A DNA stretch of 32,378 nucleotides from Octopus sinensis (lineage: Eukaryota), in contig NW_021833546.1 of NCBI RefSeq assembly GCF_006345805.1, positions 1 through 32,378 on the forward strand, in the 5' to 3' direction. The position numbers were made by a program, and so were the translations under genes. Position 1 is the first letter of the stretch, and each line of letters opens with the position of its first letter. The notes under the pieces are model-generated. The model worked only from the letters and a program-made list of their open reading frames with translations. It ran no database searches and was not told the origin of the DNA. Below are positions 1,854 to 23,086 of the stretch, one piece after another.

Positions 1854-1884
<31 letters not shown>

Positions 1885-1938: not shown

Positions 1939-1976
<38 letters not shown>

Positions 1977-2025
1977 GATTATATATACACACACTATATA
2001 CACGCACATATATATATAAATATAT
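1340..2025. repeat. Long compound (TA)n microsatellite region
   Basis: Direct observation. Similar tracts lie at 1-150, 4490-4690, 5105-5330, 5620-5800, 19940-20300, 20400-20640, 20920-21430, 29690-29810, 30010-30300 and 30990-31260. Confidence 0.95.
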
Positions 2026-2362: not shown

Positions 2363-2762
2363 CTTGTATGTATATATAATAATAATATTAGGGAGTAAAT
2401 CCAAACTTACAGGGAAAAATTAGATTTAGGATTAAATCTAATTTTATAGTATAAATATATATTATATATTATATATTATATATTATATTAAATTAGAGAT
2501 AAAACCACTATTAGGCAAATCAAACAGTGAAAAACATAAGCCAATACATAGAAATAAAATTAATTAAAAATATATAAAAAAATATAAAATATAAAAATCC
2601 AATTAAAATATTTAAATTAAAGTTAAAATTTTTAAAAATTATTTAAATTAATAATTTAAACTTATAAATTATAAATATATATATATTTTTATTATTATTT
2701 TATTTAATTATTAATTTTTTTTTATTTATATTATTTATTTTTTTATTTTTTTATTTTTTTAT

Positions 2763-3330
2763 AAGGTGGCAGTGGTAGTGGTGGTCGTGGTGGTGGCAGT
2801 GGTGGTGGTGGTGGTGGTAGTGGTGGTGGTGGTGGTGGTGGTGGTGGCAGTGGTGGTGGTAGTGGTGGTGGTGGTGGTGGTGGCAGTGGTGGTGGTAGTG
2901 GTGGTGGTAGTGGTGGTGGTGGTGGTGGCAGTGGTAGTGGTGGTGGTGGTCCGGATGCTCGAGTTGTACTTCTAGGTGGTGGTTGTAGTTGCGGTGGTTC
3001 TGACATTGTTGTTGGTGGTCGTGGTGGCTTGCGTTGCTGCAGTGCAGATGTATTTTGCAGGGTGGTGCATACAGCGGGTAGGTAGGGTGAGCAAAGTGGC
3101 AAATAGGTACAACCATCGTGGAGTGATAGGTGAGGGGAGGGGGAAAGGGAAAGGAAGGGAACCCCTTGCTTTCCCTTCCATCCCCACAACCACCACCACC
3201 ACTGCCACCATCATTACCACCACTAAAACCAGTGCCACCACTATCAAAACTACCATCACTACCATCACCATCACCACCAACACCATCCTCACCCCCCAAC
3301 CACACACCACTACCAAAACTACCACCCACC
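2763..3330. repeat. (GGT)n tract and (ACC)n tract in inverted arrangement
   Basis: GGT-rich 2763-3030 and ACC-rich 3185-3330. Confidence 0.8.
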
Positions 3331-3435
3331 CCCCATCTCTTCCTGACTATGCCTTTGTGAATCATCCTTTGTGATTCATTGATCCATAAATATATACAAA
3401 ACCATGAGACAAATATTCCTTACAATATATATATG

Positions 3436-3500
<65 letters not shown>

Positions 3501-3662
3501 GTGTGTATATTTCCCTTGTTAACAATTAACACAGAAAAAATAGATAAATAGTTACCAGGGTAGCAAATAATCACACAAGTAAAAAGGTTGTAACTCCTTG
3601 TTTTCAAAGGTAGAGATTTCAGGTTAACATAAAATATTTTGTATAATAAATATAAATAAAGA

Positions 3663-4008
3663 AATGGAATTAAACGCAGGTGTTATTCAAATTCTTTTAC
3701 TTCCGACACATGTTTCGAAGCTAAATCACGCAGAGTGAAGCTGCTAGACACAGATTGACCTTGAACTCTGCTGTGCATGCACACAAAGTTTTAACGTTCT
3801 AGCTCACTTCTGCTGTTTATAGCAGAGCTTGGAAGGAAGGTGTGTAGTGTGTGATCGTCTTATTGACGAGTTTCATTTCTTCACTTCCCTAAAGAGAAGA
3901 TTGCATTATTTTACACCATTTTATTCCTTTGGAATACTACCAATGATATCTTCGAAACATGTGTCAGAAGTAAAAGAATTTGAATAACACCTGCGTTTAA
4001 CTCCATTT
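3663..4008. repeat. Pair of ~57-bp inverted repeats (3663-3720 and 3951-4008) enclosing a mariner fragment
   Basis: aaatggaattaaacgcaggtgttattcaaattcttttacttccgacacatgtttcgaag and its near-exact reverse complement. Confidence 0.85.
3716..3875 (+). mobile_element. Fragment of the same mariner 5' region
   Basis: cgaagctaaa...cagagtgaagctgct...gttctagctcactt...gcttggaaggaaggtgtgtag aligns with the reverse complement of about 29265-29425. Confidence 0.65.
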
Positions 4009-4010
4009 AG

Positions 4011-4141
4011 TTACTCTTTTACTTGTTTCAGTCATTTGACTGTGGCCATGCTAGAGCACCGCCTTTAGTCGAGCAAATCGACCCCAGGACTTATTCTTTG
4101 TAAGCCCAGTACTTATACTATCGGTCTCTTTTGCCAAACCG
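4011..4141 (-). mobile_element. SINE family A, 3' tail
   Basis: Reverse complement of 6070-6200. Confidence 0.75.
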
Positions 4142-4611
4142 AATGAGCGGTCTTTGGCGGCTATTTCTAAATTTTCAGTATGTGGTGAAGCAACTTGTTG
4201 CTTAACCCTTAATTATAATTATATATATATATATACATATATATGCGTGTGCACACATACATACATACATACATACATACGTACGTACGTACATACATAC
4301 ATACATACATACATACATACATACATACATACATACGTACATACATACATGCATATATGTGTGTGCGTGTAAATATTATACCCTTTGAATGAGTAATTTA
4401 TGATCTCATCCACACTTTCAGAACTTGACAGCTAAATCAAAACATTAATACCAAATTCATTTGTTGTATACACACTAATATCATCTAAATATATATATCT
4501 ATATATATATATATTATATATATCTATATTATATATTATATATAATATATATACATATATAATATATATGCACACTCCATCCATTGTCTCCCGAGACAAA
4601 AGGATGCCAAA

Positions 4612-4689
<78 letters not shown>

Positions 4690-4841
4690 GTATAACTATA
4701 TAACAAAGTAAACTTGCAAGGTACCACATGAGTGAAAATGTATAGGAAAGAGGGTTGTAAATGCAGAGGTCTTTTAAGATGTTTATTGACTTGACTGGCC
4801 AAGGGCAAAAATCTTGTTGCACAATTCTTTCTCTCCTTCAT

Positions 4842-4937
4842 CTATCTGGTTTGCCAGTTCTCAGTCAAATCGTCCAACCTATGCTAGCATGGAAAGCAGA
4901 CGTTAAACAATGATGATGGTGACGATGATGATGATGA
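4842..4937 (+). mobile_element. 3' end of the same RTE-tailed family
   Basis: gtccaacctatgctagcatggaaagcagacgttaaac followed by (GAT)n. Confidence 0.65.
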
Positions 4938-4949
4938 TCTCTCTCACAG

Positions 4950-5104
4950 AGGCGCAGGAGTGGCTGTGTGGTAAGTAGCTTGCTTAGATGGTTCCGGGTT
5001 CAGTCCCACTGTGTGGCACCTTGGGCAAGTGTCTTCTATAGCCTCGGGCTGACCAAAGCCTTGTGAGTGGATTTGGTAGACGGAAACTGAAAGAAGCCCA
5101 TCGT
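4950..5104 (+). mobile_element. SINE family A, 5' half
   Basis: Head ending at aagaagcccatcg, followed by (TA)n. Confidence 0.75.
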
Positions 5105-5110
5105 ATATAA

Positions 5111-5247
<137 letters not shown>

Positions 5248-5267
5248 CTATATAGAATATATATATA

Positions 5268-5329
<62 letters not shown>

Positions 5330-5330
<1 letters not shown>

Positions 5331-5531
5331 CATTAAGACTGAACACGAAAAGGTGGACAGTCAACTGGTAGATATAGACGTCAAATCGCCATTCTCCACA
5401 AAGATTTTGTTCTCAAATAAATAAAAATAAAAATAAAATATTTGAGAACAAAATCTTTGTGGAGAATGGCGATTTGACGTCTATATCTAGCATGTTGACT
5501 GTCCACCTTTTCGTGTTCAGTCCTTAATTGG
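5330..5531. repeat. Near-perfect foldback element (~90-bp arms, 19-nt A-rich loop), flanked by TA
   Basis: Arm 5330-5419 is the reverse complement of 5439-5531 with few mismatches. Confidence 0.9.
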
Positions 5532-5627
5532 TATATATAAATATTTTAATCTTCGGATTCTTTTTAATGTGCTAGACCACTGGTTTTAATTGACTAATAT
5601 CAATTTTTACCCTTATTTTTAAATATA

Positions 5628-5776
<149 letters not shown>

Positions 5777-5799
5777 TATATACATACATATATATATAT

Positions 5800-6210
5800 A
5801 GGAGTGGCTGTGTGGTAAGTAGCTTGTTTACCAACCACATGGTTCCGGGTTCAGTCCCACTGTGTGGCACCTTGGGCAAGTGTCTTCTATAGCCTCGGGC
5901 CGACCAAGGCCTTGTGAGTGAATTTGGTATACGGAAACTGAAAGAAGCCCGTCGTATATATGTATATATATATATATATATGCGTGTGTATGTTTGTGTG
6001 TCTGTGTTTGTCCCCCTAGCATTGCTTGACAACCGATGCTGGTGTGTTTATGTCCCTGTTACTTAACGGTTCGGCAAAAGAGACCGATAGAATAAGTACT
6101 GGGCTTACAAAAAGAATAAGTCCCGGGGTCGATTTGCTTGACTAAAGGCGGTGCTCCAGCATGGCCGCAGTCAAATGACTGAAACAAGTAAAAGAGTAAA
6201 GCGTAAAGAG
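5800..6210 (+). mobile_element. tRNA-derived SINE family A, near full length (internal (TA)n/(TG)n, (GAGTAAA)-type tail)
   Basis: Pol III A-box-like tggctgtgtggtaag and B-box-like ggttcagtcc; 13 copies or fragments in the window. Confidence 0.8.
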
Positions 6211-6298
6211 AGTGTTGGTTAATTCTTCTCCTCACTCTCTCGCTTTCTCTCACTCTCATTCATTCTTTTCCACTCTCTTTCTTTCTCTCTTTCTGCAG

Positions 6299-6472
6299 TG
6301 TCAGCTCCCGCCAAAGCAGGGATCTTCTCTACAACAGCAAAGAGGCCCAACGAAAATGCGACCGAGTACATTCAGGTGGAATGTGGAAAGACTGTAAATG
6401 TAACATCCGACAGGGCCGAAAAGGTTACCATTTCTTGTGTTGGCGGTCCCAAGACGTATCAGATGGACCCAT
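6299..6472 (+). CDS. Internal coding exon A of a ZP-domain protein (first half of ZP-N, Cys1-Cys2)
   Basis: Pyrimidine tract plus ttctgcag acceptor (AG 6297-6298) and donor T|gtaagc at 6473; phase 1/1. Reads SAPAKAGIFSTTAKRPNENATEYIQVECGKTVNVTSDRAEKVTISCVGGPKTYQMDP. The split codon T+AC (Tyr) joins exon B in frame. Confidence 0.8.
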
Positions 6473-6532
6473 GTAAGCATTCTTCACTTCTTTTCCATTC
6501 TCCCTCCCTATCAATCTATCAATCTATCTATC

Positions 6533-6811
6533 TTTCCACGGGTAAACCTCACCTGTCCTCCCCTTTACACTTCATATTGACATTTCTGTGATAACGATCC
6601 CTTTTGATCAATTTTTTCCTTTCCCTTTTCCCTCCCTCTTTTTTTATTTATTATTATTTTTTTTTATCCCCCCTTTTTTTTGTCCTCTTTCTTTCCTTTT
6701 ACGATCCCTTTTGATCGAAAACCAAACCCCCCTTTTTTACCCCCAAAAGAAAAGCTCTACCTTGTAATTTGTCCTGTCTGTGTGCAGCCCTGTGTGGCTA
6801 ATAAAGAAACA
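6533..6811 (+). mobile_element. Tx1/L1-like LINE, 5'-truncated 3'UTR copy A
   Basis: Homologous to the 3'UTR of copy C (ttccacgg-taaacct... to ...ctgtgtggctaataaagaaac). Preceded and followed by TCTA repeats. Confidence 0.7.
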
Positions 6812-6829
6812 TATCTATCAGTCTATCAC

Positions 6830-6981
6830 TCTTTTACGATCCCTTTTGATCGAAAACCTACCCCACTTTTTATTTTTTAGTTTTATTTTTATTTTGCTTT
6901 TTTTCTTCTCCCCCAAAAGAAAAGCTCTACTTTGTAATTTGGCCCCTCTGTGTTCAGCCCTGTGTGGCTAATAAAGAAACA
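6830..6981 (+). mobile_element. Tx1/L1-like LINE, short 3'UTR copy B
   Basis: Same terminal ~150 nt (acgatcccttttgatcgaaaacc ... aaaagctctac ... gtggctaataaagaaac), followed by a (TCTA/TCTG/TCCA)n tract. Confidence 0.7.
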
Positions 6982-7271
<290 letters not shown>

Positions 7272-8146
7272 TGCCTGTTCGGGACGACTTTCGGGCCAGG
7301 GCCCATGGACAACTTCCAGAGATCCCTGGCCTGGCAGTGCTACCGAGAAGCGCTACCCGTTCGGGATAAGCTCTACAGACACGGCTCGAGAAACACGGGG
7401 CCGACCTGCCAGAGCGACGAAACCGTTCTGCACGCACTCATGCAGTGTCCAACAATTTCCGACCTGTGGGCTTATGTCGAACAACTGCTGTCACGTGTGG
7501 GACGAGTCAGTTTATCAGCTGAGTTTATCGTCAATATTGTCACGCCTCCTTCCTTCAAACGGGAAGGAAGAGCTATTTTCATCATCCTTGTGGCTATGGC
7601 GAAAGAATGTACCTGGTGGACGTGTCTGAAAGGATTGGAGACAAACACTTTCCTCTCTGATCAATCTCTCATCAACTTCTTCAAGTATCACTTGAATAGG
7701 AAAGTGAGAGTAGAGAGGCAAGTTTTGTCTAGCGAATGTTTTAAAAAAAGATGGGTGAATGTAGCAAGGATGGCACGTATGAATGACGAAGCCACCTTGA
7801 GCATAATCCTATGAACCCAGAAATTGAAAACAGAGCGTTACCCACTTGCAAACAAATGTGGTAACATATAACAATATTGACCAAGGTTACCGTGGTCTTT
7901 TTCGTAGGCTTTTCTTCCCACGGATAAACCTTACTTGCTTTCCCCTTCTTTTGTTTCTTTTCCTTTTTCTTTTTTCTTTTTTGTTCTTTTTTTCCCTTTT
8001 ACGATCCCTTTTGATCAAAAACCTGCGCCACCTTTCTTTTTGTTTCTTTTGTTTTTTGTTTTTTGTTTTTTTCATCCCCCAAAAGAAAAGCTCTACCTTG
8101 TAACTTGTCCCATCTGTGTGCAGCCCTGTGTGGCCAATAAAGAAAC
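7272..8146 (+). mobile_element. Tx1/L1-clade LINE 3' fragment (ORF2 C-terminal zinc-binding region plus 3'UTR), copy C
   Basis: ORF 7305-7814: LAWQCYREALPVRDKL...PTCQSDETVLHALMQC...LW matches the C-terminal Cys/His region of Tx1/L1 ORF2, with one Cys of the CxxC apparently lost. T-rich 3'UTR ends in AATAAAGAAAC. Confidence 0.8.
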
Positions 8147-8244
8147 TTATCTATCTATCTATTTATCTATCTATTCATCCATCCATCCATCCATCCATCC
8201 ATCCATCCATCTATCTATCTATCTATCTGTCTATCTATTATCTA

Positions 8245-8278
<34 letters not shown>

Positions 8279-8334
8279 CATCCATGCATCCATCATGCAT
8301 CCATCCATCCATCCATCCATCCATCCATCCATCC

Positions 8335-8388
<54 letters not shown>

Positions 8389-8687
8389 TTATCTATCTAT
8401 CCATCCATCCATCCATCCATCCATCCATCTATCTATCTATCTATCTATCTGTCTATCTGTCTGTCTGTCCGTCCGTCCGTCAGTCCATCCGTCCGTCAGT
8501 CCATCCGTCCGTTTGTCTGTCTGTCTGTCCGTCCGTCCGTCCGTCCATCCGTCAGTCCACCCGTCCATTTGTCTGTCTGTCTGCCCGTCAGTCCATCCGT
8601 CCGTTTGTCTGCCTGTCTGTCTGTCCGCCCGTCCGTCAGTCCATCCGTCCATCAGTCCATCTATCTGTCTGTCTATCTAATTATAAC

Positions 8688-9120
8688 AGAGAGGGAAGTT
8701 TTGTCTAGTGAATGTTTCAAAAAAAGATGGGTGAACGTAGCAAGAATGGCACGTGTGAATGACAGACCCACCTTGAGCACAATCCTATGAACCAGAAAAA
8801 GAAAAGAAAAAAGAGGGTCACTTACTGTAATGTATTTTTTGCACGACATTTTTACCCGAGGTTACCGTGGTCTTTTCTGTAGGCTTTTCTTTCCATGGAT
8901 AAACCTAATCTGTTTCCCATTTTACATTATGACATTTCTGTGATACACGATCCCTATTGATCGAATTTCTTCCCTTTTTTTTTTTGCTTTTCCACGATCC
9001 CCTTTGATCAAAATTCAACCCCCACCTTTATTCTTTTGTCTCTTTCCTTCCCAAAAAGAAAAGCTCTACTTTGTATTTTGTACCCCCTATGTTTAGCTCT
9101 GTGTGGCTAATAAAGAAACA
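8688..9120 (+). mobile_element. Tx1/L1-like LINE 3' fragment, copy D
   Basis: Encodes VLSSECFKKRWVNVARMAR...TLSTIL*, nearly identical to the end of the copy C ORF, with the same 3'UTR and terminus. Confidence 0.8.
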
Positions 9121-9138
9121 TATCTAACTATCTCTCTC

Positions 9139-9169
<31 letters not shown>

Positions 9170-9198
9170 ATCTTTCTCTCTCTCTATCTATCTATCTA

Positions 9199-9239
<41 letters not shown>

Positions 9240-9248
9240 TTCTATCTA

Positions 9249-9280
<32 letters not shown>

Positions 9281-9299
9281 ACTCAGAATCACAAAAAGG

Positions 9300-10197
9300 G
9301 TTTGCCTCCATCACCGCCAATATCACCCACAACACCACTACTACCACCACCACCAAAACCACCAGCACCACAACCAGCACCACCACCAAAACCACCACCA
9401 TCACCACCAAAACCACCATCACCACCACCACTACCACCACCACCACCACCATAACCACCACCACCACCATCACCAAAACCACCACCACCACCACCAAAAC
9501 CACCACCACTACTGCCGCCAAACCACCACCACCACCACCACCACCGCAACCACCGCTGCCGCCACCACCACCATCACCACAACCATCACCAAAACCACCA
9601 CCACTACCGCCACCAAACCACCACCACCACCACCATCACCACTGCCAAACCACCACTACCGCAACCACCACCGCAACCACCGCTGTCGCCACCACCACCA
9701 CCACCATCACCAAAACCACCACCACTACCGCCACCAAACCACCAGAACCACCACCACCACCACCACACCACCACAACCACCGCTGCCGCCACCACCACCA
9801 CCACCACCACCACAACCACCGCTGCCGCCACCACCACCACCACCACCACCACCACCATCACCACAACCACCACCACCACCGCCGCCAAACCACCACCACC
9901 ACCACCACCACCACCACCACCACCACCACCACCAAAACCATTACCAAAACCACCACCACCAAACCACCACGACCACCACCGCCACCACCGCCGCAGCCAC
10001 CACCACGACCATCACCACCACCACCACCGCCACCACCACCACCGCCGCCATAACCACCACCACCACCACTACCGCCGCCACCACCACCATCACCACCACC
10101 ACCATCACCACCACCACCACCACCACTACTGCCGCCACCACCACCACCACCACCACTGCCGCCAAACCACCACCACCACCACCACCACCACCACCTA
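9300..10197 (+). repeat. Degenerate (ACC)n tract
   Basis: About 900 nt of ACC/GCC/ATC/AAA variants ending roughly 40 nt before the exon B acceptor. Confidence 0.9.
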
Positions 10198-10235
10198 CAA
10201 CTTATGTCCTTTGTGTCCTTCTTTCTCTGTTGCAG

Positions 10236-10666
10236 ACGAAGTATATCTGCAGATCAATATCAGTGATCTCACTCCAACGACTGGCACCTGCAGGCTGCCC
10301 AGAGTCTCCATGAGCAATCAGGGATCTAATCCCAGTGCCAATAGCCATCCGGGTCATCCGGGCCAAGACAGCAATGCCAACGCCAGCGATGATGAGGATG
10401 TCTTCCTGGTGAACGTGACGACTTCCCGAAGCAACGGGCAACGCAAGACGTACCTGGAGCATTGCATGTACGAGTCGTTTGGAATTATGCAGGTAAAAAT
10501 GAACAGCTTGGTCGATGCCGCAGCACAAGGGGCAGGAGGAACAGGAGGAGATGATCATGGAGAAGGAGGAGGCGGAAGGGAAGACACTAAAGACCTAAGC
10601 ATCGTCATGGAAATACGCGACAAATCATGGAATATGCTGACAGCACAAACGTCAGCCAACACTGCT
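10236..10666 (+). CDS. Internal coding exon B (second half of ZP-N with Cys3 and the Cys4 C-x-Y motif, Gly-rich linker, start of ZP-C)
   Basis: ctttctctgttgcag acceptor and GCT|gtaagg donor at 10667; phase 1/0, matching both neighbours. Reads EVYLQINISDLTPTTGTCRLP...VFLVNVTTSRSNGQRKTYLEHCMYESFG...DLSIVMEIRDKSWNMLTAQTSANTA. Confidence 0.85.
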
Positions 10667-10672
10667 GTAAGG

Positions 10673-10701
<29 letters not shown>

Positions 10702-10703
<2 letters not shown>

Positions 10704-11092
10704 TATGTTTGACTTTTGCTTTATATTTGTACAAGTTGGCTCCAAGTCTCACCCAGAAACCTCAAGAGACAACAGGTTGGATGTTCACATTATTGTTATG
10801 CCATATATTTGGGGGGTTTTTTTGGTGTTGTACCAGTGGATGTCTAAAAAAAAAAATTATGTTTGTTTTAAACCTTGAGATTACATAGAATGTATTTTGC
10901 GTAGGGTATGAGCAGTTCCCATGAGCACTATCGTTTGAATTTCTACCATTTTTTGGTTTCCTGGTATCTGAGTTACATAGCAATCAGCCCCTTTTGCTAT
11001 CATTTCCAGGGCACGTATGACAACAGGTATTGTTTTAGTCTTCAGGTTTCACATTTTGCTCATTTCTATTTCAAGATCTTTATACTTGCTTT
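10702..11092 (-). mobile_element. R4/Dong-like non-LTR retrotransposon 3' fragment, unit 1
   Basis: Minus strand reads SKYKDLEIEMSKM*NLKTKTIPVVIRALEMIAKG...EIQTIVLMGTAHTLRKIHSM*, the C-terminus of an RLE endonuclease. Bounded by (TAA)n. Confidence 0.8.
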
Positions 11093-11111
11093 ATTATTAT
11101 TATTATTATTA

Positions 11112-11517
11112 TTCTATGTTTGACTTTTGCTTTGCATTTGTACAAGTTGGCTCCAAGTCTCACCCAGAGACCTCAAAAGACAACAGGCTGGAAGTTCACG
11201 TTGTTGTTATGCCTAGGGTGCCATATATTTGGTTTTGTACTTAGTATTGTACTAGTGAATGTTTAAGAAACCATAAGAAAATTATGTTTGTTTTAAAACT
11301 TGAGATTACATAGAATGTATTTTGCGTAGGATATGAGCAGTTCCCATGAGCACTATCGTTTGAATTTCTACCATTTTTGGGTTTCCTGGTATCTGAGTTA
11401 CGTAGCAATCAGCCCCTTTTGCTATCATTTCCAGGGCACCTATGACAACAGGTATTGTTTTAGTCTTCAGGTTCCCCATTTTGCTAATTCCTATTTCAAG
11501 ATCTTTATACTTGCTTT
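11112..11517 (-). mobile_element. R4/Dong-like 3' fragment, unit 2
   Basis: Near-identical to unit 1 (425-nt period over the coding part), with the same 5' truncation point. Bounded by (TAA)n. Confidence 0.8.
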
Positions 11518-11536
11518 ATTATTATTATTATTATTA

Positions 11537-12071
11537 TTCTATGTTTGACTTTTGCTTTGCATTTGTACAAGTTGGCTCCAAGTCTCACCCAGAAACCTCA
11601 AGAGACAACAGGTTGGAAGTTCATGTTGTTGTTATGCCTAGGGTGCCACATATTTGGTTTTGTACTTAGTGTTGTACTAGTGAATGTTTAAGAAACCATA
11701 AGAAAATTATGTTTGTTTTAAAACTTGAGATTACATAGAAAGTATTTTGCGTAGGATATGAGCAGTTCCCATGAGCACTATCTTTTGAATTTCTACCATT
11801 TTTGGGTTTCCTGGTATCTGAGTTACGTAGCAATCAGCCCCTTTCGCTATCATTCCCAGGGCACGTATGACAACAGGTATTGTTTTAGTCTTCAGTTCCC
11901 ATTTTGCTGATTTCTATTTCAAGATCATATTTCCTCAGTTTTTGGTAGGTCTTGACAGATACGTTTATATATCGATTGGACAGTCATATGATGAGGAGGC
12001 ATGTTCTTTGTTGAAGTCTTTCAATATGATGTCTGGCCTATTTGCATCTATCTTCCTGTCAGTTTGAATGG

Positions 12072-12072
<1 letters not shown>
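11537..12072 (-). mobile_element. R4/Dong-like 3' fragment, unit 3 (longer; includes the RLE catalytic PD motif)
   Basis: Minus strand begins IQTDRKIDANRPDIILKDF..., then a frameshifted KYDLEIEISKM... continuation. Bounded by (TAA)n. Confidence 0.85.
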
Positions 12073-12127
<55 letters not shown>

Positions 12128-12182
12128 CCACTCATTGACCCCAGTATGCAACTGGTACTTAATTTATCAACCCTGAAAGGGT

Positions 12183-12305
12183 TTGGTCACAAGTCTTTGG
12201 TCGGCCCGAGGCTATAGTAGAAGACACTCGCCCAAAGTGCCACACAGTGGGAATGAATCCGGAACCATGTGGTTGGTAAGCAAGCTACTTACCACACAGC
12301 CACTC
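12183..12305 (-). mobile_element. SINE family A, head fragment
   Basis: Reverse complement of the family A head. Confidence 0.7.
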
Positions 12306-12448
12306 CTGCATCTGTCCATATGTTCTGAGTTCATAAAGGTTAACTTTGCCTTTCATCCTTTCGGGAGTGATGAATGAAGTACCAGTTGCGTACTGGGGTC
12401 GATGCAATTGACTATTCTCCATCCTCCAAAATTGCTGCCCTTGTGGCA

Positions 12449-12483
<35 letters not shown>

Positions 12484-12499
12484 GATTATTATTATTATT

Positions 12500-13163
<664 letters not shown>

Positions 13164-13299
13164 CATCATCATCATCATTATTATTATTATTATCATCATT
13201 ATTATTATTATTATTATCATTATTATTATTGTTATTATTATTATCATCATTATCATCATTATTACCATTATTATTATTCTTCTTCTTATTATTATTATT

Positions 13300-13711
13300 G
13301 AGTGAGAGAGCAGTGCATGCCATCAAAGTGACACTGGGGTAAAAATATACAGAGCCCAGTATACCCATCATGACTAGCCGTCTGATAAGGGTACACCAGC
13401 AACATGCATCACAACCATATGTGCGCAACATGGTGATCTCATATCAAGATAACAGCACATGACCTTGCAGGTGGGGGCCCAGTTAGAATATTCTTCAGGT
13501 TGAGTAGCCCATCTGCTCAAAGGTCCCTGAATAAGGGTTGCTTTAGGATGTTAACGAAACACCTATGTTTCCTGAGGTGAATTATTCAAACTCCAAAGAA
13601 TCCCTCTCAACACATGGCTATGATGCTCCCCCACTACTTCTGCTCGTGATCAGAGATGCACGTATCGTCAGCCACTAAGGGACATGCTCAACAGGTTACG
13701 GTCAAACAACT

Positions 13712-13712
<1 letters not shown>
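13300..13712 (-). mobile_element. Same element, copy 2 (truncated at the inferred 5' end)
   Basis: Shares the gagtgagagagcag terminus and stops after ggtcaaacaactg. Flanked by (ATT)n. Confidence 0.75.
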
Positions 13713-13753
<41 letters not shown>

Positions 13754-13794
13754 TTATTATTATTATCAATATTATTATTATTGTTATTATTGTG

Positions 13795-13995
13795 AAGGTG
13801 GCGGGCTGGTAGAAATGTTTGCAAGCTGAGCGAAATGCAGTGTCTTTACATTCTGAGTTCAAATTCTGCTGAGGTCGACTTTGCCTTTCATTCTTTCCGG
13901 GGTTGATAAATCAAGTACCAGTTGCATACTGGGGTTAATTTAATCGACTGCCCCCCTCCCTAATAAATTTCAGACTTTGTGCCTAGAGTAGAAAA
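13795..13995 (+). mobile_element. SINE family C with an alternative (ATT)n-ending tail
   Basis: Same head and body as 22286-22511 but ends ...ctttgtgcctagagtagaaaatattatt. Related fragments lie at about 12125-12182 (-), 12315-12450 (+) and 15612-15790 (+). Confidence 0.65.
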
Positions 13996-14005
13996 TATTA
14001 TTATA

Positions 14006-14041
<36 letters not shown>

Positions 14042-14540
14042 TACTTTTTTTTTTCTTCTTTCAAATTTTCTTCCATTTCTTGCCGAGTGTCTTCCCGACT
14101 CCTAGGGCAAAGAAACTCATAGTGTATATTGGTAGGCCATTAAACCAAACTCAGTAGTTCGTTCATTTTTTTTTTTTTTTAAAATCAAAATACATGAGCA
14201 GCAACAGTTCTCACATCGACAATGCTCTTCTCAATACGTGTGATGTACCAGTTAAGACAATCTTTTGCACTTCTTGCAGGAATGGTAAGCCAGGGATCAT
14301 TCTCATATAATTTTCGGTTCCCTTCTTGATCATTCCTAGTGCTCCTACGATCACTGGTATTGTAAGACCGCCTTGAGATGCCACATTTTCTCAATTTCAA
14401 TGAGTAGGTCTTTATATTTTCTGAGCTTGTCAAACTCTTTCGCTGAGATATTATGATCACAGGGGATGCTCATGTCGATCAATAAGCAAACTTATTGTTT
14501 TGGTCTTTCAAGCAATCTTTATTGTTTTGGTCTTTTATCG
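14042..14540 (-). mobile_element. R4/Dong-like 3' fragment, second subfamily
   Basis: Minus strand with small indels reads KDQNNK.CLLIDMSIPCDHNISAKEFDKLRKYKDLLIEIEKMWHLKAVTIPVIVGALGMIKKG...VQKIVLTGTSHVLRRALSM*. Flanked by (TAA)n. Confidence 0.85.
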
Positions 14541-14575
<35 letters not shown>

Positions 14576-14790
14576 ATTATTGTTATTATTATTATATTAT
14601 TATTGTTATTATTATTATTATCATTATCATCATTATCATAATTATTATTATTTTATTTTATGATTATTAGTATTATTATTATTATTAATCAATATTATTA
14701 TTGTTTATTATTATTATTATTATTATTATCAATATTATTATTATTATTATTATTATCATTATCATCATTATCATAATTATTATTATTATT

Positions 14791-15343
14791 GAGTGAGAGA
14801 GCAGTTCATGCCATCAAAGTGACACTGGGGTAAAATATACGAAGCCCAATATACCCATCATGACTACCCGTCTGATAAAGGTACACCAGGCACATGCATC
14901 ACAACCATATGTGCGCGACATGGTGATCTCATATCAAGATAAACAGCACATGACCTTGCAGGTGGGGCCCAGTTAGAATTTTCTTCAGGTTGAGTAGCCC
15001 ATCCCGCTCAAACGATCCCTGAATAAGGGTTGCTTAAGGATGTTGAAAGAACCACCCATGTTTCCAGAGGTGAACTATTCAAACCCCAAAGAATCCCGCT
15101 CACACATGGCTATGATGCTCCCCCACTACTTCTGCTCGTGATCAGAGATGCACATATCGTCAGCCACTAAGGGACATGCTCAACTGGTTAAGGTCAAACA
15201 ACTGACAAGCAATCTGTGGTATTGAGCAGAATATTTGCTGTAGCCCATCTTTTATACCAAGACAAAACAATGTTACATGATAACACTTCTAATCAGTTAG
15301 ATCAGAAGCCATGAGAGCCACTGCCTGGTACTGCATCAGGGCA

Positions 15344-15345
<2 letters not shown>
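14791..15345 (-). mobile_element. Same element, copy 3 (full length)
   Basis: Both termini match copy 1. Flanked by (ATT)n. Confidence 0.75.
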
Positions 15346-15374
<29 letters not shown>

Positions 15375-15539
15375 TTATTATTATCAGTATTATTATTGTT
15401 ATTATTATTATTATCATTATCATCATTATCATATTATTATTATTATTATTATATTATTATTATTATTATTATCATATTATTATTGTTATTATTATTATTA
15501 TCACTTATCATCATATCATAATTATTTATCATTATCATA

Positions 15540-15578
<39 letters not shown>

Positions 15579-15809
15579 GTCAATATTATTATTGTTATTA
15601 CTATTATTGTTAAAGTGTGGTGAGTTGGCAAAACTATTAAAGCATCAGAAAAAGTTTTTGGTAGTATTATTTTCAGCTCTCAGCGCTCTGAGTTCAAATA
15701 CTACCTGGGTCAAAATTGTCTTTCATCATTTTGGGGATTGATGAGTTATTTTATCCCTTCCCTCAAAATTGCAAGTCTTGGCACTGTGCCTGAATCCCCT
15801 TCATCTTTG

Positions 15810-16335
15810 TCATCCTCATCATCATCATCGTCATCATGAACTTAACCATCCTGTTCACTATCACAACCACCAACTACCTCATCAAAATCACACCATCATC
15901 ACCACCACCACCACTACCACCATTGCCACAACAGCCACCACAACCACCACCAACAACAACAACACTACCATCACAATCACCACCACCACCACTATATCAC
16001 CACCACCACTGCCTCCACCACCATCACAATCACCACCACCACTATCATCACAATCACCACCACTAACAACACTATCACCACCACCACCACTATCATCATC
16101 ACCATCACCACCACCACTACCACCACCACCACCACTACCACCACAATCACCACCACCACTATCATCACAATTACCACCACTAACACCACTACCACCACCA
16201 CCAACACCACTATCATCATCACCACCACCACCATCACCAATGCCACCACAATCACCACCACCACCACCACTACCACCACCACCTCCACCACCACCACCAC
16301 CACTACCATCACAATCACCAACGCCACCACCGCCA
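15810..16335 (+). repeat. Degenerate (ATC)n/(ACC)n tract
   Basis: Ends roughly 60 nt before the exon C acceptor. Confidence 0.9.
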
Positions 16336-16398
16336 CTTCATTAATATAAACCCTCATTCTCTCTTTTTTCCTTTTCCTCTCTCTCTCTCTTCCTACAG

Positions 16399-18468
16399 GT
16401 GTGTTTGTTTGCCAACATATCCGCATACAACGGAACAGACCTTGGTGCGCCCCACAGCATCGACACCAGCAAAGCCAGAGACAGGGAAAGCGGAACAGCC
16501 TCACATATCTTGGTAAAGGATTGCAACTTGACATTATCGAATTCGACGGTGCTACCACTGATCAGAGATTACTGTGGCACAGGTGACTTTATCCCGATGG
16601 ACAAGGGTGTCACGAATGACGGCGAAACACTTGTCAGTTTCCCTTTCCATACAGCGGAGCTTATTTTGGGTGGCATAACTGCAAACTGCTCCTATATCCT
16701 TTGCGGCAATGACTCCTGTAAAGGGGACAGCTGTGAAGTTGGAGGGATGGTGGAGGAATTCGACGGTGTGTCACGAGATGACGATGGTGATGATGAAGAC
16801 GATGGCAGCGATGGTGATGATGAAGACGATGGCAGTGATGGTGATGGTGTTGGTGAAGATGGTGATAGCGGCAGTAGTAATAGTAGTAGTAGTAATAGTA
16901 GTAGTAGTAATAGTAGTAAGGATGGTGCTGATGGTGGTGGTGATGACATCAATGCTGGCCGAACCGACAGCGATGACAAGGATCACAGCAGCAATAATGA
17001 TGCTAGCAACAAGGATGATGGTGATGGTGATGGTGATGGTAGTCATGGTGATGGTGATGGTAGTCATGGTGATGGTGATGGTAGTCATGGTGATGGTGAT
17101 GGTAGTCATAGTGATGAGAATGATGATGGTGATGATGGTGATGATGGTGATGATGGTGATCATAATCACGATCATGATGATAGCAAGAATCATACACGCA
17201 GTGACGCTGAAGATACGAACCCAGAAAATTCAGATGCTGAGAAACAGCCGGCACCAGAACCAGAGGAGACATCAGCTGTGCCTGAGGATCAGAATGTTAA
17301 TGAGACAGCAGATGTGATGAAGAATTTGACACTGAATAGTGGGGATGTTGGATTTGGTGGGGAGACAAACGAACATGATGAAGACAGTCAGCCGGCATCG
17401 GAGACAGAAGGGAGTCAAAACAGTTTGGAAGCATCTGCGAACCCTGCTGTGAATGCAACTGAAGCCCCAGCTAGGCAACCAAATAGACATAAGAACAGAC
17501 ATCATTCGTCGAAGAAAAGAAAAGGTGGGAAACGAGAGAGAAGGGATCACGATGAAGAGGAAAGAGAAGAAGAGGAAGAAGAAGAAGAGAATGGAGAGGA
17601 AAGAGAAGGGGAAGAGGAAGAAGGAGCAGGGGCAGGAGGACATGAAGAGGAAGAGGAAGGAGTGGAACATGCAGAAGAAGGAGGAGAAGGAGGAGGAGAA
17701 AAACAAAAGGGAAAGGAAAATGATTTAACAACATTTGGAAACTCATCTCAAACAAATGACAATAGTATTGACCACAGCAACAACAATGACAGTTTTGACA
17801 AAAGCATAGAACCTTCGACGAGTATTGACGAAGATCACCAGGGGTCAGAAAATGGTTCAAATCCTGATGATCATCATGCCAGTACCGGTCAACAAGGGGA
17901 GGAAAAGGATGATGTTGATGGTAGCGATGATCACGAGGGCAATGATCACAGAAATGACGATCATGATGGTGATGATGATGATGGTAAAGTTAAGGATAAG
18001 GAAAATAACAGTAGTGAGGACAGTGGAGATGAAGTTGACCATGGTGATGATGCGAATAGAGACGGCAGTGATAGTGGTGGTGAAAATACTGACGGGGACA
18101 AAGAAACAGCAGTGATAACGTCAAAAGAATCTGGCCAAGAGACACCAACGACGGCTATCGTGGATGACGGTGATGTCAAGGATAGTTCGACAGAGACGTC
18201 ATCAAACACAACAGAGGGTGCAACGAAGATGGACGCAGGCATGAAGGACACTGCATCACAGCCGACAGAGGATGGCGACAGCCCGAACTCAGAAGATTCT
18301 TCGACGCCAGCAGAAGAAACTGAAAAGCGAGAGGGGGAGGAGGATGAGAGGAGCGAAGGTGAGGACAATGAGGAAGGAGACGAGGAAAGGGAAGAGGAGG
18401 TGGGAGAGGCGGATGTCAAGATGGAAAAGACAGAGCCACGTGTCGATTCTGACCTGTCGAAAACCTGA
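16399..18468 (+). CDS. Terminal exon C, first frame: ZP-C core followed by an Asp/Glu/Ser/Gly-rich disordered region
   Basis: ctctcttcctacag acceptor, phase 0. HILVKDCNLTLSNSTVLPLIRDYCGTG...LVSFPFHT...ITANCSYILCGNDSCKGDSC fits the ZP-C pattern (L-x-V-x-x-C ... LI-x-x-x-C ... F-x-F ... C-x-x-x-x-C ... C ... C). 689-aa ORF with coherent acidic composition. Confidence 0.85.
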   Translation: MCLFANISAYNGTDLGAPHSIDTSKARDRESGTASHILVKDCNLTLSNSTVLPLIRDYCGTGDFIPMDKGVTNDGETLVSFPFHTAELILGGITANCSYILCGNDSCKGDSCEVGGMVEEFDGVSRDDDGDDEDDGSDGDDEDDGSDGDGVGEDGDSGSSNSSSSNSSSSNSSKDGADGGGDDINAGRTDSDDKDHSSNNDASNKDDGDGDGDGSHGDGDGSHGDGDGSHGDGDGSHSDENDDGDDGDDGDDGDHNHDHDDSKNHTRSDAEDTNPENSDAEKQPAPEPEETSAVPEDQNVNETADVMKNLTLNSGDVGFGGETNEHDEDSQPASETEGSQNSLEASANPAVNATEAPARQPNRHKNRHHSSKKRKGGKRERRDHDEEEREEEEEEEENGEEREGEEEEGAGAGGHEEEEEGVEHAEEGGEGGGEKQKGKENDLTTFGNSSQTNDNSIDHSNNNDSFDKSIEPSTSIDEDHQGSENGSNPDDHHASTGQQGEEKDDVDGSDDHEGNDHRNDDHDGDDDDGKVKDKENNSSEDSGDEVDHGDDANRDGSDSGGENTDGDKETAVITSKESGQETPTTAIVDDGDVKDSSTETSSNTTEGATKMDAGMKDTASQPTEDGDSPNSEDSSTPAEETEKREGEEDERSEGEDNEEGDEEREEEVGEADVKMEKTEPRVDSDLSKT

Positions 18469-19460
18469 CTGAAGCGATAACATCAGGGGATGAGTCTGAT
18501 CTTCCACCCACGAAACTCGGTGAGGAAACTTTGAATGAGAATTGGGACTCCGACAATGAGGGCTTTGACAGCGAGGAAAACGACACGTCTGCTGCAGCTG
18601 AGCCTGCACCTACAACTGTGAAAATAGCTGCAGCTGCAGCAACCACTGCAGCTACTGTGATGAAGTCAAGGACATTAGAGGATAAGGACAGGGAGGGCTC
18701 AGCGTTTTCAGAAGAGGGCAATGAAGGAGAAGACAATAATGGCCTTGGTGATGACAATGATAATGAAAATGGTGACAGCGATGATGACAATGATGATGGT
18801 GATGACAATAGCGGTGGTGGTGGTGGTGGTGGTGGTGGTGGTGGTGGTGGGGATAAGGACGCTGATGACAATGATGAAAAGGGTGAGAGTAACGACGAAG
18901 AAGTGGAAGAAGGGGAGAAGTTTGAAGAAGGGCCAGATGCTGGAGAGCAGCAATCTACTGGTTCGTCTGAGGTGAGCAATGAAGAGGAGGAGGAGAAAGC
19001 AATCCCATCTGATTCAGACAGTGAGGGCCAAAGCTTTGTGGACAATCCCGAATCGGAAGACGACAGCAACAACAACAATAGCAACAGCAGTAACATAGGG
19101 GACAGCAACGAACAGGGGACAGGTGAGAATGAGATGCTCCCTGCACAAACTACATATTATCAACTGACACAGACAACGCCACCTACAGGTCAGAATGGAA
19201 ACACGATACAGAAACCCGAAAAGGGTGATGCCGGCGGTGGGAACACTGTAGACGCAACTGGCACCACGGACAACAACGATGATTACGATGGCACGGAAAA
19301 CGGCAAGAAATCTGGACATCCTCACTCAAGAAGGAAAGGTGGTGCCTCCGGAAAACACAAGAAGAAGAAGGGCTCCAGGAAGACCGGGAGGAAGAAGAGA
19401 GGATGGACATACGAAAAGCATCTTAGCGACACTCCTGACCAACGCGGGTTTCGCAGATGA
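18453..19460 (+). CDS. Terminal exon C, second frame: continuation of the acidic tail after a 1-nt frameshift, ending in a basic C-terminus
   Basis: Frame is open from 18453 (PVENLTEAITSGDESDLPPTKLGEETLNENW...) and overlaps the end of the previous ORF. Composition is the same, and it ends ...KHKKKKGSRKTGRKKRGWTYEKHLSDTPDQRGFRR*. Confidence 0.75.
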   Translation, partial: PVENLTEAITSGDESDLPPTKLGEETLNENWDSDNEGFDSEENDTSAAAEPAPTTVKIAAAAATTAATVMKSRTLEDKDREGSAFSEEGNEGEDNNGLGDDNDNENGDSDDDNDDGDDNSGGGGGGGGGGGGGDKDADDNDEKGESNDEEVEEGEKFEEGPDAGEQQSTGSSEVSNEEEEEKAIPSDSDSEGQSFVDNPESEDDSNNNNSNSSNIGDSNEQGTGENEMLPAQTTYYQLTQTTPPTGQNGNTIQKPEKGDAGGGNTVDATGTTDNNDDYDGTENGKKSGHPHSRRKGGASGKHKKKKGSRKTGRKKRGWTYEKHLSDTPDQRGFRR

Positions 19461-19896
19461 CTGAGGGCTGATTTGGGGCTCTGGTAATCAGGTGTAGAAG
19501 AGGGTGAAATAACAGAAGGGTGAGCATTGGTCAGTCATATGATCAAAGACACTCCAATTATGACCATCCCTTCTTTTATTTAGACGTAATGTATCTAGGA
19601 TTGCATTATATAATGTATAGTATAATAGTCAGTTTTAGTGTCTATGGTTGTCATTTAGCCCCAGGTCAGCATTGATCCAGCAGACATAATCGAAGATGTT
19701 CTAGTTATGACCATTCCATCAAATTTTAGACATAGGACATCAAAACTAGGTTATCTAATTTTTAGTATAGGACTTAATATTTTTCGCTGTAGCTCTTGTT
19801 CTTTAACCTCATCATGTCTTCTATTCAGGCATAGTGTATCTAGGACAGTGATATACAACAGCTGCAGTTCATACCCAACAAAATCTAAAGTAAGAA

Positions 19897-19902
19897 AATA
19901 AA
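19897..19902 (+). promoter_or_regulatory. Candidate polyadenylation signal of the ZP-domain gene
   Basis: AATAAA about 440 nt downstream of the stop, just before a long (TA)n tract. Motif only. Confidence 0.25.
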
Positions 19903-20037
19903 TCGACCTTTATCATTTTCCTTGATGATTTATCTCAAAAGTGTATATATACATATATATAAATATATGTATATATACATATACATCATACATACATATA
20001 TATATATATAATATATATACTATTATATGTATATATA

Positions 20038-20106
<69 letters not shown>

Positions 20107-20682
20107 CATATATACATATATATATATATACATATACATATATATGTATATGTAGCATGTATATATATATATATGTATATATATATAGCATAAATATATG
20201 TATATTGCCTTAATACCGAATTTATATATAGTAGTAATATATATAGCTATCTTATAAAATGTATATGTAATATATATATATACACATATAGGTAAGTGGT
20301 ATATTAGGCAATCTATCATACATTTTATTGGCCGTTCGATCAGCTTCGGAAAGCAAAGAATTAATATTTAATAATTCTACCTGGCAAAAACAATGTATAA
20401 CATATGTGACTATATGATATAATATGTATATGTAATATCTGTATGGTATATATGATATATCACGTGATGTGTGATATATATATATATATGTATATATATT
20501 TATCTGTATAGATGTATTATATATGTATGTATATTATCTGGTAGTAGTATATGATTATATATATGTATATATGTATATATATTATTATATATATATCTAT
20601 GTATATTATATATCTATATATAATATATATATATATATAATTAATCAAATTAATTCCAACATAATCTGATTTTCATGTTTTA

Positions 20683-20847
20683 TTATTTACAGTTTTACAA
20701 TATTAAAATAAAACTAGTACATTTGGTGCAGTAAGCAGTCATCAGGCTCTTGTGGAACATGACCACCACTACATAAACCTGATGACTGCGTAACATATGA
20801 AGTACTAGCTTATTTCAATATTGAAAAATTGTGATAATTGTAAATAA
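20683..20847. repeat. Decayed foldback
   Basis: Perfect 12-bp core gcagtcatcagg (20735-20746) / cctgatgactgc (20778-20789), with imperfect outward extension. Confidence 0.65.
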
Positions 20848-20918
20848 CAGAAAAGGAAAATCAGAGAGTAAGTGGAATTTTGTTGATTAATATATTCTTC
20901 TATACACAATCATACAAA

Positions 20919-20995
<77 letters not shown>

Positions 20996-21315
20996 GAGTG
21001 TATTTACCTTGTTAACAATTAACACGGATATAAATAAATAAATAGTTACCAGGGCAGCAATATGTAGAAAGTAAAAATTTGTTTTAAACCTGCGTTAACT
21101 CCATTTTTTATCATATATATATATATATTTATACATACTATAATATATATGATATATATATTATATATACATATATATATACACATATATATACATATAC
21201 ATATATATATATATCATGCAAATGCATACATGCATATATATGCCATATATATATATATATCTATATATATCATATATATATATATATACATATATATAAT
21301 ATATATACACATATA

Positions 21316-21382
<67 letters not shown>

Positions 21383-21383
21383 C

Positions 21384-21429
<46 letters not shown>

Positions 21430-21431
<2 letters not shown>

Positions 21432-21586
21432 CTATCTACGTTATTTACATTCGGCGGATATTTGTCCTTATCTTGTTTGTTGTTAACACAACGTTTCGGC
21501 TGATTTACCCTCCAGCCTTCATCAGGTGTCTTGGGGAAATTTCGAACCTGGGTTCTCATTCCTAAGATATTTTTCAATGTTATTAC

Positions 21587-21640
<54 letters not shown>

Positions 21641-21765
21641 CATCATCATTATTATTATTATTCAGCTCACTGCCTGGAATCGAACTCGGAATGTAAATAA
21701 TGTAAATAATGTACATAATGTCTCATCTCTTAAATATAGAACTGTACAGCTCTACGTGATTCAAA
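21430..21765 (-). mobile_element. Penelope-like terminal repeat fragment containing the hammerhead, split by (ATT)n
   Basis: Hammerhead motif, plus the segment gaatgtaaataa present in inverted orientation at about 21440 and 21690. Confidence 0.45.
21485..21530 (-). ncRNA. Minimal type I hammerhead ribozyme (Penelope-type)
   Basis: Minus strand GACAC-CTGATGA-A-GGCTG(GAGGGTAAAT)CAGCC-GAA-ACGT-T-GTGTT. Intact core, helix I 5 bp, helix II 5 bp, palindromic minimal helix III. Confidence 0.7.
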
Positions 21766-22035
21766 GTTTCATGCGGCCATACAATGAACCCATCTCATCA
21801 GATCTTTGGGCGAAGAGAACTACCCACCCACGAAACTTAGAATCAAACTGTTATTAAAAATACATGTAACACTGATCAAATGTGTTGAGTGCTACATTCT
21901 TCCATTTGCCCACTCACACACAAACACACACACATATATGCATGAATGCATGCATATAAGTGTGGTAGTGTCAAATAATAAGTATGATTTGCTTACCACT
22001 GCATTGGTGGATAAATATTCTTTTTTTTGTGTGAT

Positions 22036-22177
22036 TTAGCAAGGCAACCAGTGGTTTCCTGTAGAAAAGATATTCACAATTATTCAAGAGAACCACTTCG
22101 GTATGTTGATATTCATTGCCATTTTGAAGAAATTGTGGAGACCTTTTACTGCATGGAACCATTGGTTGCCTCGTTAA
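22036..22177. repeat. Decayed foldback
   Basis: aggcaaccagtggtttcc pairs with ggaaccattggttgcct; arms align for about 55 nt. Confidence 0.7.
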
Positions 22178-22248
22178 GCCACAAATAAATATACACATGT
22201 GTATGTGTGTATATATATACATATATATGTGTATATATATATGTATAC

Positions 22249-22285
<37 letters not shown>

Positions 22286-22286
<1 letters not shown>

Positions 22287-22509
22287 TTCTTTATTGCCCA
22301 CAAGGGGTTAAACATAGACGGGACAAACAAGGACAAAGGGATTAAGTCGATTACATCGACCCCAGTGCGTAAATGGTACTTAATTTATCGACCGCGAAAG
22401 GGTGAAAGGCAAAGTCGAGCTCAGCGAAATTTGAACTCAGAACATAACAGCAGACGAAATACGGCTACGGATTTCGCCTGGTGTGCTAACGTTTCTGCCA
22501 GCTCGCACC

Positions 22510-22511
<2 letters not shown>
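22286..22511 (-). mobile_element. SINE family C with a Tx1-like 3' end
   Basis: Minus strand runs aaggtgcgagctggcagaaacgttagcac...ctgagttcaaatt...gactttgcctttcaccc...tttaaccccttgtgggcaataaagaaa. Confidence 0.75.
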
Positions 22512-22548
<37 letters not shown>

Positions 22549-22568
22549 TAGATATATAATTATAATAT

Positions 22569-22730
22569 AGGCGCAGGAGTGGCTATGTGGTAAGTAGCTG
22601 CTTACCAACCACATGGTTCCAGGTTCAGTCCCACTGTGTGGCACCTTGGGCAGGTGTCTTCTACTATAGCCTCAGGCTGACCAAAGCCTTGTGAGTGGTT
22701 TTGGTAGACGGAAACTGAAAGAAGCCCATC
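22569..22730 (+). mobile_element. SINE family A, 5' half
   Basis: Head only, directly followed by a family B SINE. Confidence 0.75.
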
Positions 22731-22749
22731 ATATATATGTGTATATATA

Positions 22750-23049
22750 CGCAATGGCCCAGTGGTTAGGGCAGCGGACTCGCGGTCGGAGGATCGCGGT
22801 TTCGATTCCCAGACCGGGCGTTGTGTGTGTTTATTGAGCGAAAACACCTAAAAGCTCCACGACTCTCCGGCAGGGTGTGGTGATCCCTGCTGTACTCTTT
22901 CACCACTCTTTCTCCCACTCTTTCTTCTGCTGGCCTGCTCGCTTACCCAGCGGGGTGGCGTCATTCAAAGGCTAAAACAATGCGAACGCATTGTGACCAG
23001 CGATGTGTAGCAACATCTGATGGTCTGGTCGGTCACGTGATCACGTGAT
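22750..23049 (+). mobile_element. SINE family B with a tRNA-Arg-like head and tail type 1 (possibly one of the octopus OR families)
   Basis: gcaatggcccagtggttagggcagcggactcgcggtcggaggatcgcggtttcgattccc head; tail ttggcctgctcgctta...ggtcacgtgat. Family name is from memory and not verified. Confidence 0.75.
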
Positions 23050-23086
23050 ATATATATATATATAATATATATATATTATATATATA

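Follow-up and report, generated by a model that had tools for sequence, protein, structure and literature searches.

A VERL-type zona pellucida module and a long acidic tail in an incomplete gene model of Octopus sinensis

Known zona pellucida (ZP) precursors carry a furin site, an external hydrophobic patch, and a transmembrane (TM) or glycosylphosphatidylinositol (GPI) anchor shortly after the ZP-C part of their ZP module, and ZP assembly is explained by a cleavage close to the membrane, through which an inhibitory hydrophobic strand is set free. A locus of Octopus sinensis raises the question of whether a ZP module can be continued by a long polyanion instead. The locus lies on contig NW_021833546.1 (assembly GCF_006345805.1, positions 1 to 32,378 of the forward strand), and the whole of this 32,378-nucleotide stretch is referred to as the window. 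An earlier note, made from the letters alone, had proposed that three exons between positions 6299 and 19460 encode a ZP module followed by an acidic, disordered tail in place of a membrane anchor. Here, we describe three exons that join in one reading frame, a product that is matched by the Pfam family VERL_C, and an acidic tail that continues ZP-C in the same exon and is interrupted by a frame break. In our judgment, the locus is probably the 3′ part (at least three exons) of a gene for a secreted extracellular matrix protein that combines a ZP module of the VERL/VEZP type with a disordered polyanion.

Exon structure and family of the ZP module

Exons A, B, and C on the plus strand are bounded by canonical splice sites, and their phases (1/1, 1/0, and 0) combine into one uninterrupted reading frame (Table 1), so that the in-frame joining of three exons proposed in the earlier note was borne out. 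The product of exon A comprises about 25 residues and the first half of ZP-N with the first two cysteines, C1 (VEC, 6382–6384) and C2 (ISC, 6436–6438). In its long form, exon B contributes the second half of ZP-N (C3 at 10289 and C4 at 10463), the interdomain linker, and a first strand-like segment of ZP-C, DLSIVMEIRDKSWNML (10592–10639). Exon C encodes ZP-C and then the acidic tail. As exon A starts in phase 1 and holds no in-frame start codon, at least one further exon must lie upstream, and the 5′ end of the gene is probably located outside the window, together with the signal peptide.

The spliced product was matched by VERL_C (PF25272), a model of 231 positions with a curated gathering cut-off of 27.2 bits. 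With the short form of exon B and without trimming, the score was 29.7 bits (E 7.2e-7) and the match covered profile positions 153–231 only; with the long form, likewise untrimmed, it rose to 35.2 bits. Trimming of a low-complexity insert, SMSNQGSNPSANSHPGHPGQDSNANASD, which occupies the ZP-N loop between C3 and C4, resulted in 47.6 bits (E 2.4e-12) and a collinear match to positions 1–231. Only after removal of this insert did the ZP-N half align, across the junction of exons A and B, to positions 1–85, and the exon C piece alone was matched by positions 153–231 (E 3.9e-6); the N- and C-terminal halves were recognized independently and in the right order. None of 10 reversed or Cys-fixed shuffled sequences was matched by VERL_C, which demonstrates that the match is not a by-product of cysteine spacing or composition. 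In VERL and its VEZP paralogues, the C-terminal domain is the ZP polymerization module (PMC5480393, PMC3567151), and these reports together with the length of the model suggest that VERL_C describes this very module.

The two forms of exon B differ in their donor. Beyond the donor at 10492, which had been assumed in the earlier note, the frame stays open up to a second donor of the same phase at 10666, and use of the latter adds 58 residues. With the donor at 10492, the product is about 30 residues short between ZP-N and ZP-C compared to both VERL_C and uromodulin. After trimming of the insert, the long form reached its 47.6 bits in one stretch (1–231), whereas the short form reached 39.5 bits in two stretches. 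When the 58-residue extension was reversed or shuffled, the eight resulting versions scored 39.9–43.8 bits, so that about 2 bits can be attributed to a mere spacer and about 6 bits to the actual sequence of the extension. By consensus, the donor at 10492 is the stronger of the two. On the basis of these sequence comparisons, 10666 is a more likely end of exon B than 10492, although the long and short forms may also represent alternative isoforms. The limits of exon A and the starts of exons B and C were confirmed, whereas a donor of exon B at 10666 fits the domain model better. We also considered an extra micro-exon of phase 0/0 in the intron between exons B and C and rejected all four candidates: two are located in copies of a 425-bp tandem repeat, one in a low-complexity tract of the (ATT)n type, and one (10973–11014, 14 codons) is devoid of ZP-like sequence. 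Paralogous ZP exons were not found elsewhere in the window.

The cysteine pattern agrees with a ZP module. All motifs listed in the earlier note (VEC, ISC, GTC, HCMY, VKDC, RDYC, NCSYILC, SC, and SC) are present, and the cysteine codons start at 6382, 6436, 10289, 10463, 16522, 16573, 16687, 16702, 16717, and 16732. The four cysteines of ZP-N (VEC, ISC, GTC, and HCMY) correspond to residues 29, 47, 77, and 135 of the spliced product, with C1 in a V-x-C strand. The six cysteines of ZP-C are separated by gaps of 17, 38, 5, 5, and 5, compared to 21, 39, 5, 7, and 4 in human uromodulin, whose sequence was checked residue by residue against PDB 6zs5. Furthermore, the module contains 11 N-X-S/T sequons in 257 residues, as would suit a secretory protein. 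An eleventh, unpaired cysteine (16402–16404; QVC or TAVCLF) is encoded near the beginning of exon C, within the linker region between ZP-N and ZP-C, and makes the total odd; the uromodulin module likewise has eleven cysteines. A partner for this additional cysteine could be provided by an upstream domain or by a second molecule.

The acidic tail and its interruption

The codon of the last ZP-C cysteine (16732–16734) runs directly into the tail. Part 1 of the tail consists of D (18.6%), E (15.1%), G (13.5%), and S (11.8%) as major residues, and D, E, G, S, and N together account for 66%; it lacks cysteine and has a net charge of −148. The best 19-residue Kyte–Doolittle mean of the tail is 1.06, i.e., far below TM grade. 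Repeats in part 1 comprise (DGDGSHG)n at 17023–17109 and a poly-E run at 17554–17625, and the sequence is not a pure microsatellite. The first furin-like motif is found in a basic island, NRHKNRHHSSKKRKGGKRERR (17482–17544), which places the first R-x-K/R-R 267 residues past the last cysteine of ZP-C. Part 2 resembles part 1 in composition and codon signature. It includes a poly-G run (18813–18850), an Ala/Thr stretch that is not of TM grade (18618–18662), and a C-terminal basic island, SRRKGGASGKHKKKKGSRKTGRKKRG (19326–19403), with the motif RKKR. In 577 residues of the tail, we counted six S-x-E and 11 S-x-D motifs, and a comparison of the tail to Pfam revealed no family match.

Both open reading frames (ORFs) of the tail are coding. 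Their open runs of 577 and 335 codons compare to a maximum of 187 codons in 1000 shuffles, and in both parts stop codons abound in the frame that lies two bases downstream of the coding one, so that the parts share a codon signature. The earlier note had described a tail of about 900 residues, dominated by D, E, S, G, and N and free of cysteine and of hydrophobic segments; its composition was confirmed, and its frame proved to be broken. An in-frame stop terminates part 1, and part 2, which overlaps part 1 by 13 nt (18453–18465, cctgtcgaaaacc, including an A4 run), continues in the −1 frame. As joining of the two parts demands a one-base change inside these 13 nt, a length of "about 900" residues is conditional: the tail measures 576 residues as assembled and 911 if one base is corrected. 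An intron bridging the two frames is represented by two weak candidates only, each of which would delete hundreds of codons, and neither was accepted. The simplest reading is a one-base difference within the overlap, which could stem from misassembly of the A4 run or from a real and recent frameshift.

Alternatively, the frame break may have to be taken at face value, in which case the protein would end at 18468 with a tail of 576 residues and be followed by a recently inactivated remnant of 335 codons, or the whole locus would be a decaying pseudogene. The stop TGA at 18466–18468 with its continuation in the −1 frame fits this explanation, as do the failure to find a 5′ exon in the window and the finding that no annotated or predicted protein of any species matches the region. 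However, the stop is the only defect of an open frame of about 2.9 kb, it coincides with an A4 run at which one missing base would explain it, and the ZP exons are intact and have good splice sites. Moreover, the codon signature is preserved in the second ORF, which closes with a basic island like that of part 1. We therefore regard a truncated or decaying gene as unlikely, while it remains the strongest competitor of an intact gene for a ZP protein with an acidic tail.

With respect to the elements expected after ZP-C, no consensus furin site, external hydrophobic patch, or TM or GPI anchor was identified in the sequence at hand. A scan of the 3′ flank (19461–32378) for TM-like exons returned matches in AT-rich repeats only and is not decisive. 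The claim of an acidic tail instead of an anchor is supported as far as the window reaches, subject to the frame break. Another explanation is that the acidic stretch does not belong to the main mature protein, since a donor after ZP-C might splice to an unseen exon encoding a furin site, patch, and anchor. Nearly all characterized ZP precursors, VERL included, carry a C-terminal propeptide (PMC5480393), and GT dinucleotides occur just past ZP-C, e.g., ACG/GTGTGT near 16766; the indecisive scan of the flank also leaves room for such an exon. On the other hand, the 577-codon frame is in phase with ZP-C and shows a strong codon periodicity, which is unlike an intron given the shuffle maximum of 187, and no credible TM exon was detected in 19461–32378. 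In addition, a TM domain is not universal among ZP proteins: the EGFL shell proteins of bivalves are molluscan ZP proteins that have lost it (PMC9290575), and the absence of an anchor is hence not unprecedented. Taken together, this makes splicing out of the tail improbable, and the mature transcript would contain the tail and lack an anchor.

Weighing the reading, related proteins, and possible meaning

Several results weigh against a secreted ZP protein with a polyanionic tail. With regard to the gene model, the exon structure was derived from genomic sequence, a scan of positions 1–6298 for an ATG-initiated hydrophobic exon of the appropriate phase 1, i.e., a signal peptide, revealed microsatellite artefacts only, an in-frame stop (18466) divides the tail into 576 residues and 335 codons, and an anchor exon could lie within or beyond the repeat-rich 3′ flank. 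With regard to the module, the canonical Pfam models for ZP-N (PF23344) and ZP-C (PF00100) were not listed at E ≤ 10 for any construct; human uromodulin, used for comparison, reached 58.7 and 126.3 bits, respectively. BLASTP against the uromodulin ZP module was non-significant, and AlphaFold2, applied to the exon-C part only and as a single sequence without an alignment, yielded a predicted local distance difference test (pLDDT) score of 36, which is too low to be informative. With regard to homologues, a word-indexed search of 5.8 billion clustered proteins, for which the spliced ZP region was used in raw and in trimmed form, returned nothing at E ≤ 10. A phmmer search of 1.84 billion representatives with the ZP-C part of exon C returned three matches, all of them spurious (one tandem-repeat ORF on a metagenome contig and two bacterial S/T/G-rich repeat proteins), and neither PDB sequence searches nor a scan of JGI metagenome contigs produced a match.

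The match to VERL_C combined with the failure of PF23344 and PF00100 points to a divergent, mollusc-type ZP module and not to the textbook one. The ZP module postulated in the earlier note is therefore supported by VERL_C and by the cysteine spacing, with the silence of the canonical models as a qualification. The expectation that automatic annotation would overlook the module applies to the classic models, which miss the VERL-type branch; it does not apply to current Pfam, in which PF25272 detects the module and labels it VERL_C. A chance resemblance between a ZP module and an unrelated disulfide-rich domain would agree with the non-matching classic models, the BLASTP result, the empty PDB searches, and the pLDDT of 36, but it is very improbable in view of a full-length collinear VERL_C match at E 2.4e-12, whose halves are found independently and in order, of Cys-fixed shuffles that do not match, and of a spacing that fits the ZP-C of uromodulin.

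An exact-product look-up of the exon-C ORF returned no called gene. The protein database that we searched holds Argonauta proteins, yet it provided no homologue, which indicates that the gene is fast-evolving, lineage-restricted, or unannotated. The metagenome match among the three phmmer results, located on the ENA contig ERZ26222911 (546–1907), is a 62-residue tandem-repeat ORF whose sequence FTYPFHHAKLQILLHGVTANSLYL is similar to the strand SFPFHTAELILGGITANCSYIL of ZP-C (44% identity over 34 residues; E 4e-9 summed across six copies). This likeness is probably due to chance and inflated by the repeats.

Among known systems, abalone VERL and VEZP are closest to the octopus protein by virtue of the full-length VERL_C match, molluscan origin, many N-glycosylation sequons, and low-complexity inserts in the module. 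In VERL itself, 22 N-terminal repeats of ZP-N precede the ZP module and a TM segment follows it (PMC5480393), whereas the octopus ZP-C is followed by a polyanion of 576 to 911 residues and lacks a furin site, patch, or TM segment. With uromodulin, ZP1–4, and the tectorins, the protein shares a four-cysteine ZP-N with a V-x-C start and a six-cysteine ZP-C, and its interdomain linker is comparable to that of canonical ZP proteins when the long exon B is used. Unlike these proteins, it has no RxxR within about 260 residues of the last cysteine and no GPI or TM signal. Bivalve EGFL proteins, which derive from EGF-ZP proteins, are also of the molluscan ZP type and are soluble matrix components without a C-terminal TM domain (PMC9290575); however, they comprise EGF domains and no long acidic tail. 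Finally, the tail resembles DSPP, DMP1, and Aspein in its D+E content of 34%, its lack of cysteine, and its predicted disorder. It differs from them in that S amounts to only 12% and neither (DSS)n repeats nor a poly-D block are present. With this serine content, no (DSS)n repeat, and no Pfam match, the D/E/G-rich tail is only weakly described by the label "DSPP/DMP1-like" that had been proposed for it, and the comparison to DSPP is compositional at best. We conclude that the domain architecture is real and moderately unusual, a variant of the known VERL-type ZP family in a gene model that is incomplete and partly broken.

If the protein is made as reconstructed, it would be secreted and heavily N-glycosylated, with the ZP module as its only globular unit. 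By homology, this module may make the protein part of extracellular filaments or of a ZP matrix. The tail would contribute fixed negative charge at high density (−148 to about −200) that is able to bind cations and water, and the basic islands with KRERR and RKKR are candidate proprotein-convertase sites at which parts of the tail could be released. As the VERL family is known from egg coats, an egg coat is our best guess for the location, albeit a tentative one. Whether the protein represents an anchor-free type of cephalopod ZP protein, in which a polyanionic brush of about 600–900 residues replaces both the cleavable propeptide and the membrane anchor, is doubtful. To our knowledge, which stems from a non-systematic survey of the literature, no ZP protein has been described in which a polyanion of this size is fused directly to ZP-C. 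If this type exists, its ZP filaments would display dense fixed charge and form a new kind of cation- and water-binding extracellular scaffold, with possible roles in chorion swelling, metal sequestration, or the statolith matrix. Control of polymerization would then operate without an external hydrophobic patch, which raises the questions of how assembly is regulated and which function a charged ZP filament serves in the egg chorion, the statocyst, or another matrix of cephalopods. The VERL-type ZP family would furthermore extend from the egg coats of gastropods to cephalopods.

Repeats and mobile elements around the exons

Table 1. Features of the locus and its surroundings, in positions of the window. 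A slash marks a splice junction.
Feature	Position	Strand	Details
Exon A	6299–6472	+	Internal exon, phase 1 in and out; polypyrimidine tract and acceptor ttctgcag/, donor CAT/GTAAGC
Exon B, long form	10236–10666	+	Acceptor ctgttgcag/, phase 1 in; donor GCT/GTAAGG, phase 0
Exon B, short form (earlier note)	10236–10492	+	Donor CAG/GTAAAA, phase 0
Low-complexity insert	10307–10390	+	28 codons, ZP-N loop between C3 and C4
Exon C	Start 16399	+	Acceptor cctacag/, phase 0; ZP-C, then acidic tail
ZP-C	16399–16734	+	Extra Cys at 16402, then six Cys; FPF strand, many N-X-S/T sequons
Acidic tail, part 1	16735–18465	+	576 residues, same exon and frame as ZP-C
Frame break	18453–18468	+	In-frame stop TGA 18466–18468; −1 frame open only from 18453
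Acidic tail, part 2	18453–19460	+	335 codons and stop TGA 19458–19460, −1 frame
Candidate polyadenylation signal AATAAA	19897–19902	+	First after the second stop, 437 nt downstream; motif only
Dispersed repeat of about 400 bp	123–266, 4011–4141, 4956–5132, 5800–6260, 12187–12307, 22575–22749, 23092–23462, 23812–24216, 26130–26718, 27601–27776, 31267–31996		
Retrotransposon reverse transcriptase, C-terminal part	7305–7814	+	ORF in the intron between exons A and B; its matches carry PF13966 (zf-RVT)

The window is rich in repeats and full of microsatellites. Two very long (CAC)n tracts of 290 and 149 copies (9333–10195 and 15891–16336) immediately precede the acceptors of exons B and C, respectively, and a tract of the complementary type (2743–3374) is found upstream of exon A. 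These tracts give rise to long Thr/Pro/His ORFs that are not continuous with the exons. The 425-bp tandem repeat mentioned above comprises three copies with 92% identity (10680–11926) and begins 14 bp after the exon B donor at 10666.

The window also harbors a dispersed repeat of about 400 bp, of which at least 13 copies with 75–94% identity were counted in one or the other orientation. It gave neither a tRNA nor an Rfam match, and one of its copies ends about 40 bp before the acceptor of exon A. Retrotransposon remnants comprise the C-terminal part of a reverse transcriptase (Table 1) and a second reverse-transcriptase fragment at about 8700–8790. The best named relative of the reverse-transcriptase fragment in the table is from the octopod Argonauta hians (58% identity), in agreement with a cephalopod origin of the window, and ENA proteins reach up to 76% identity.

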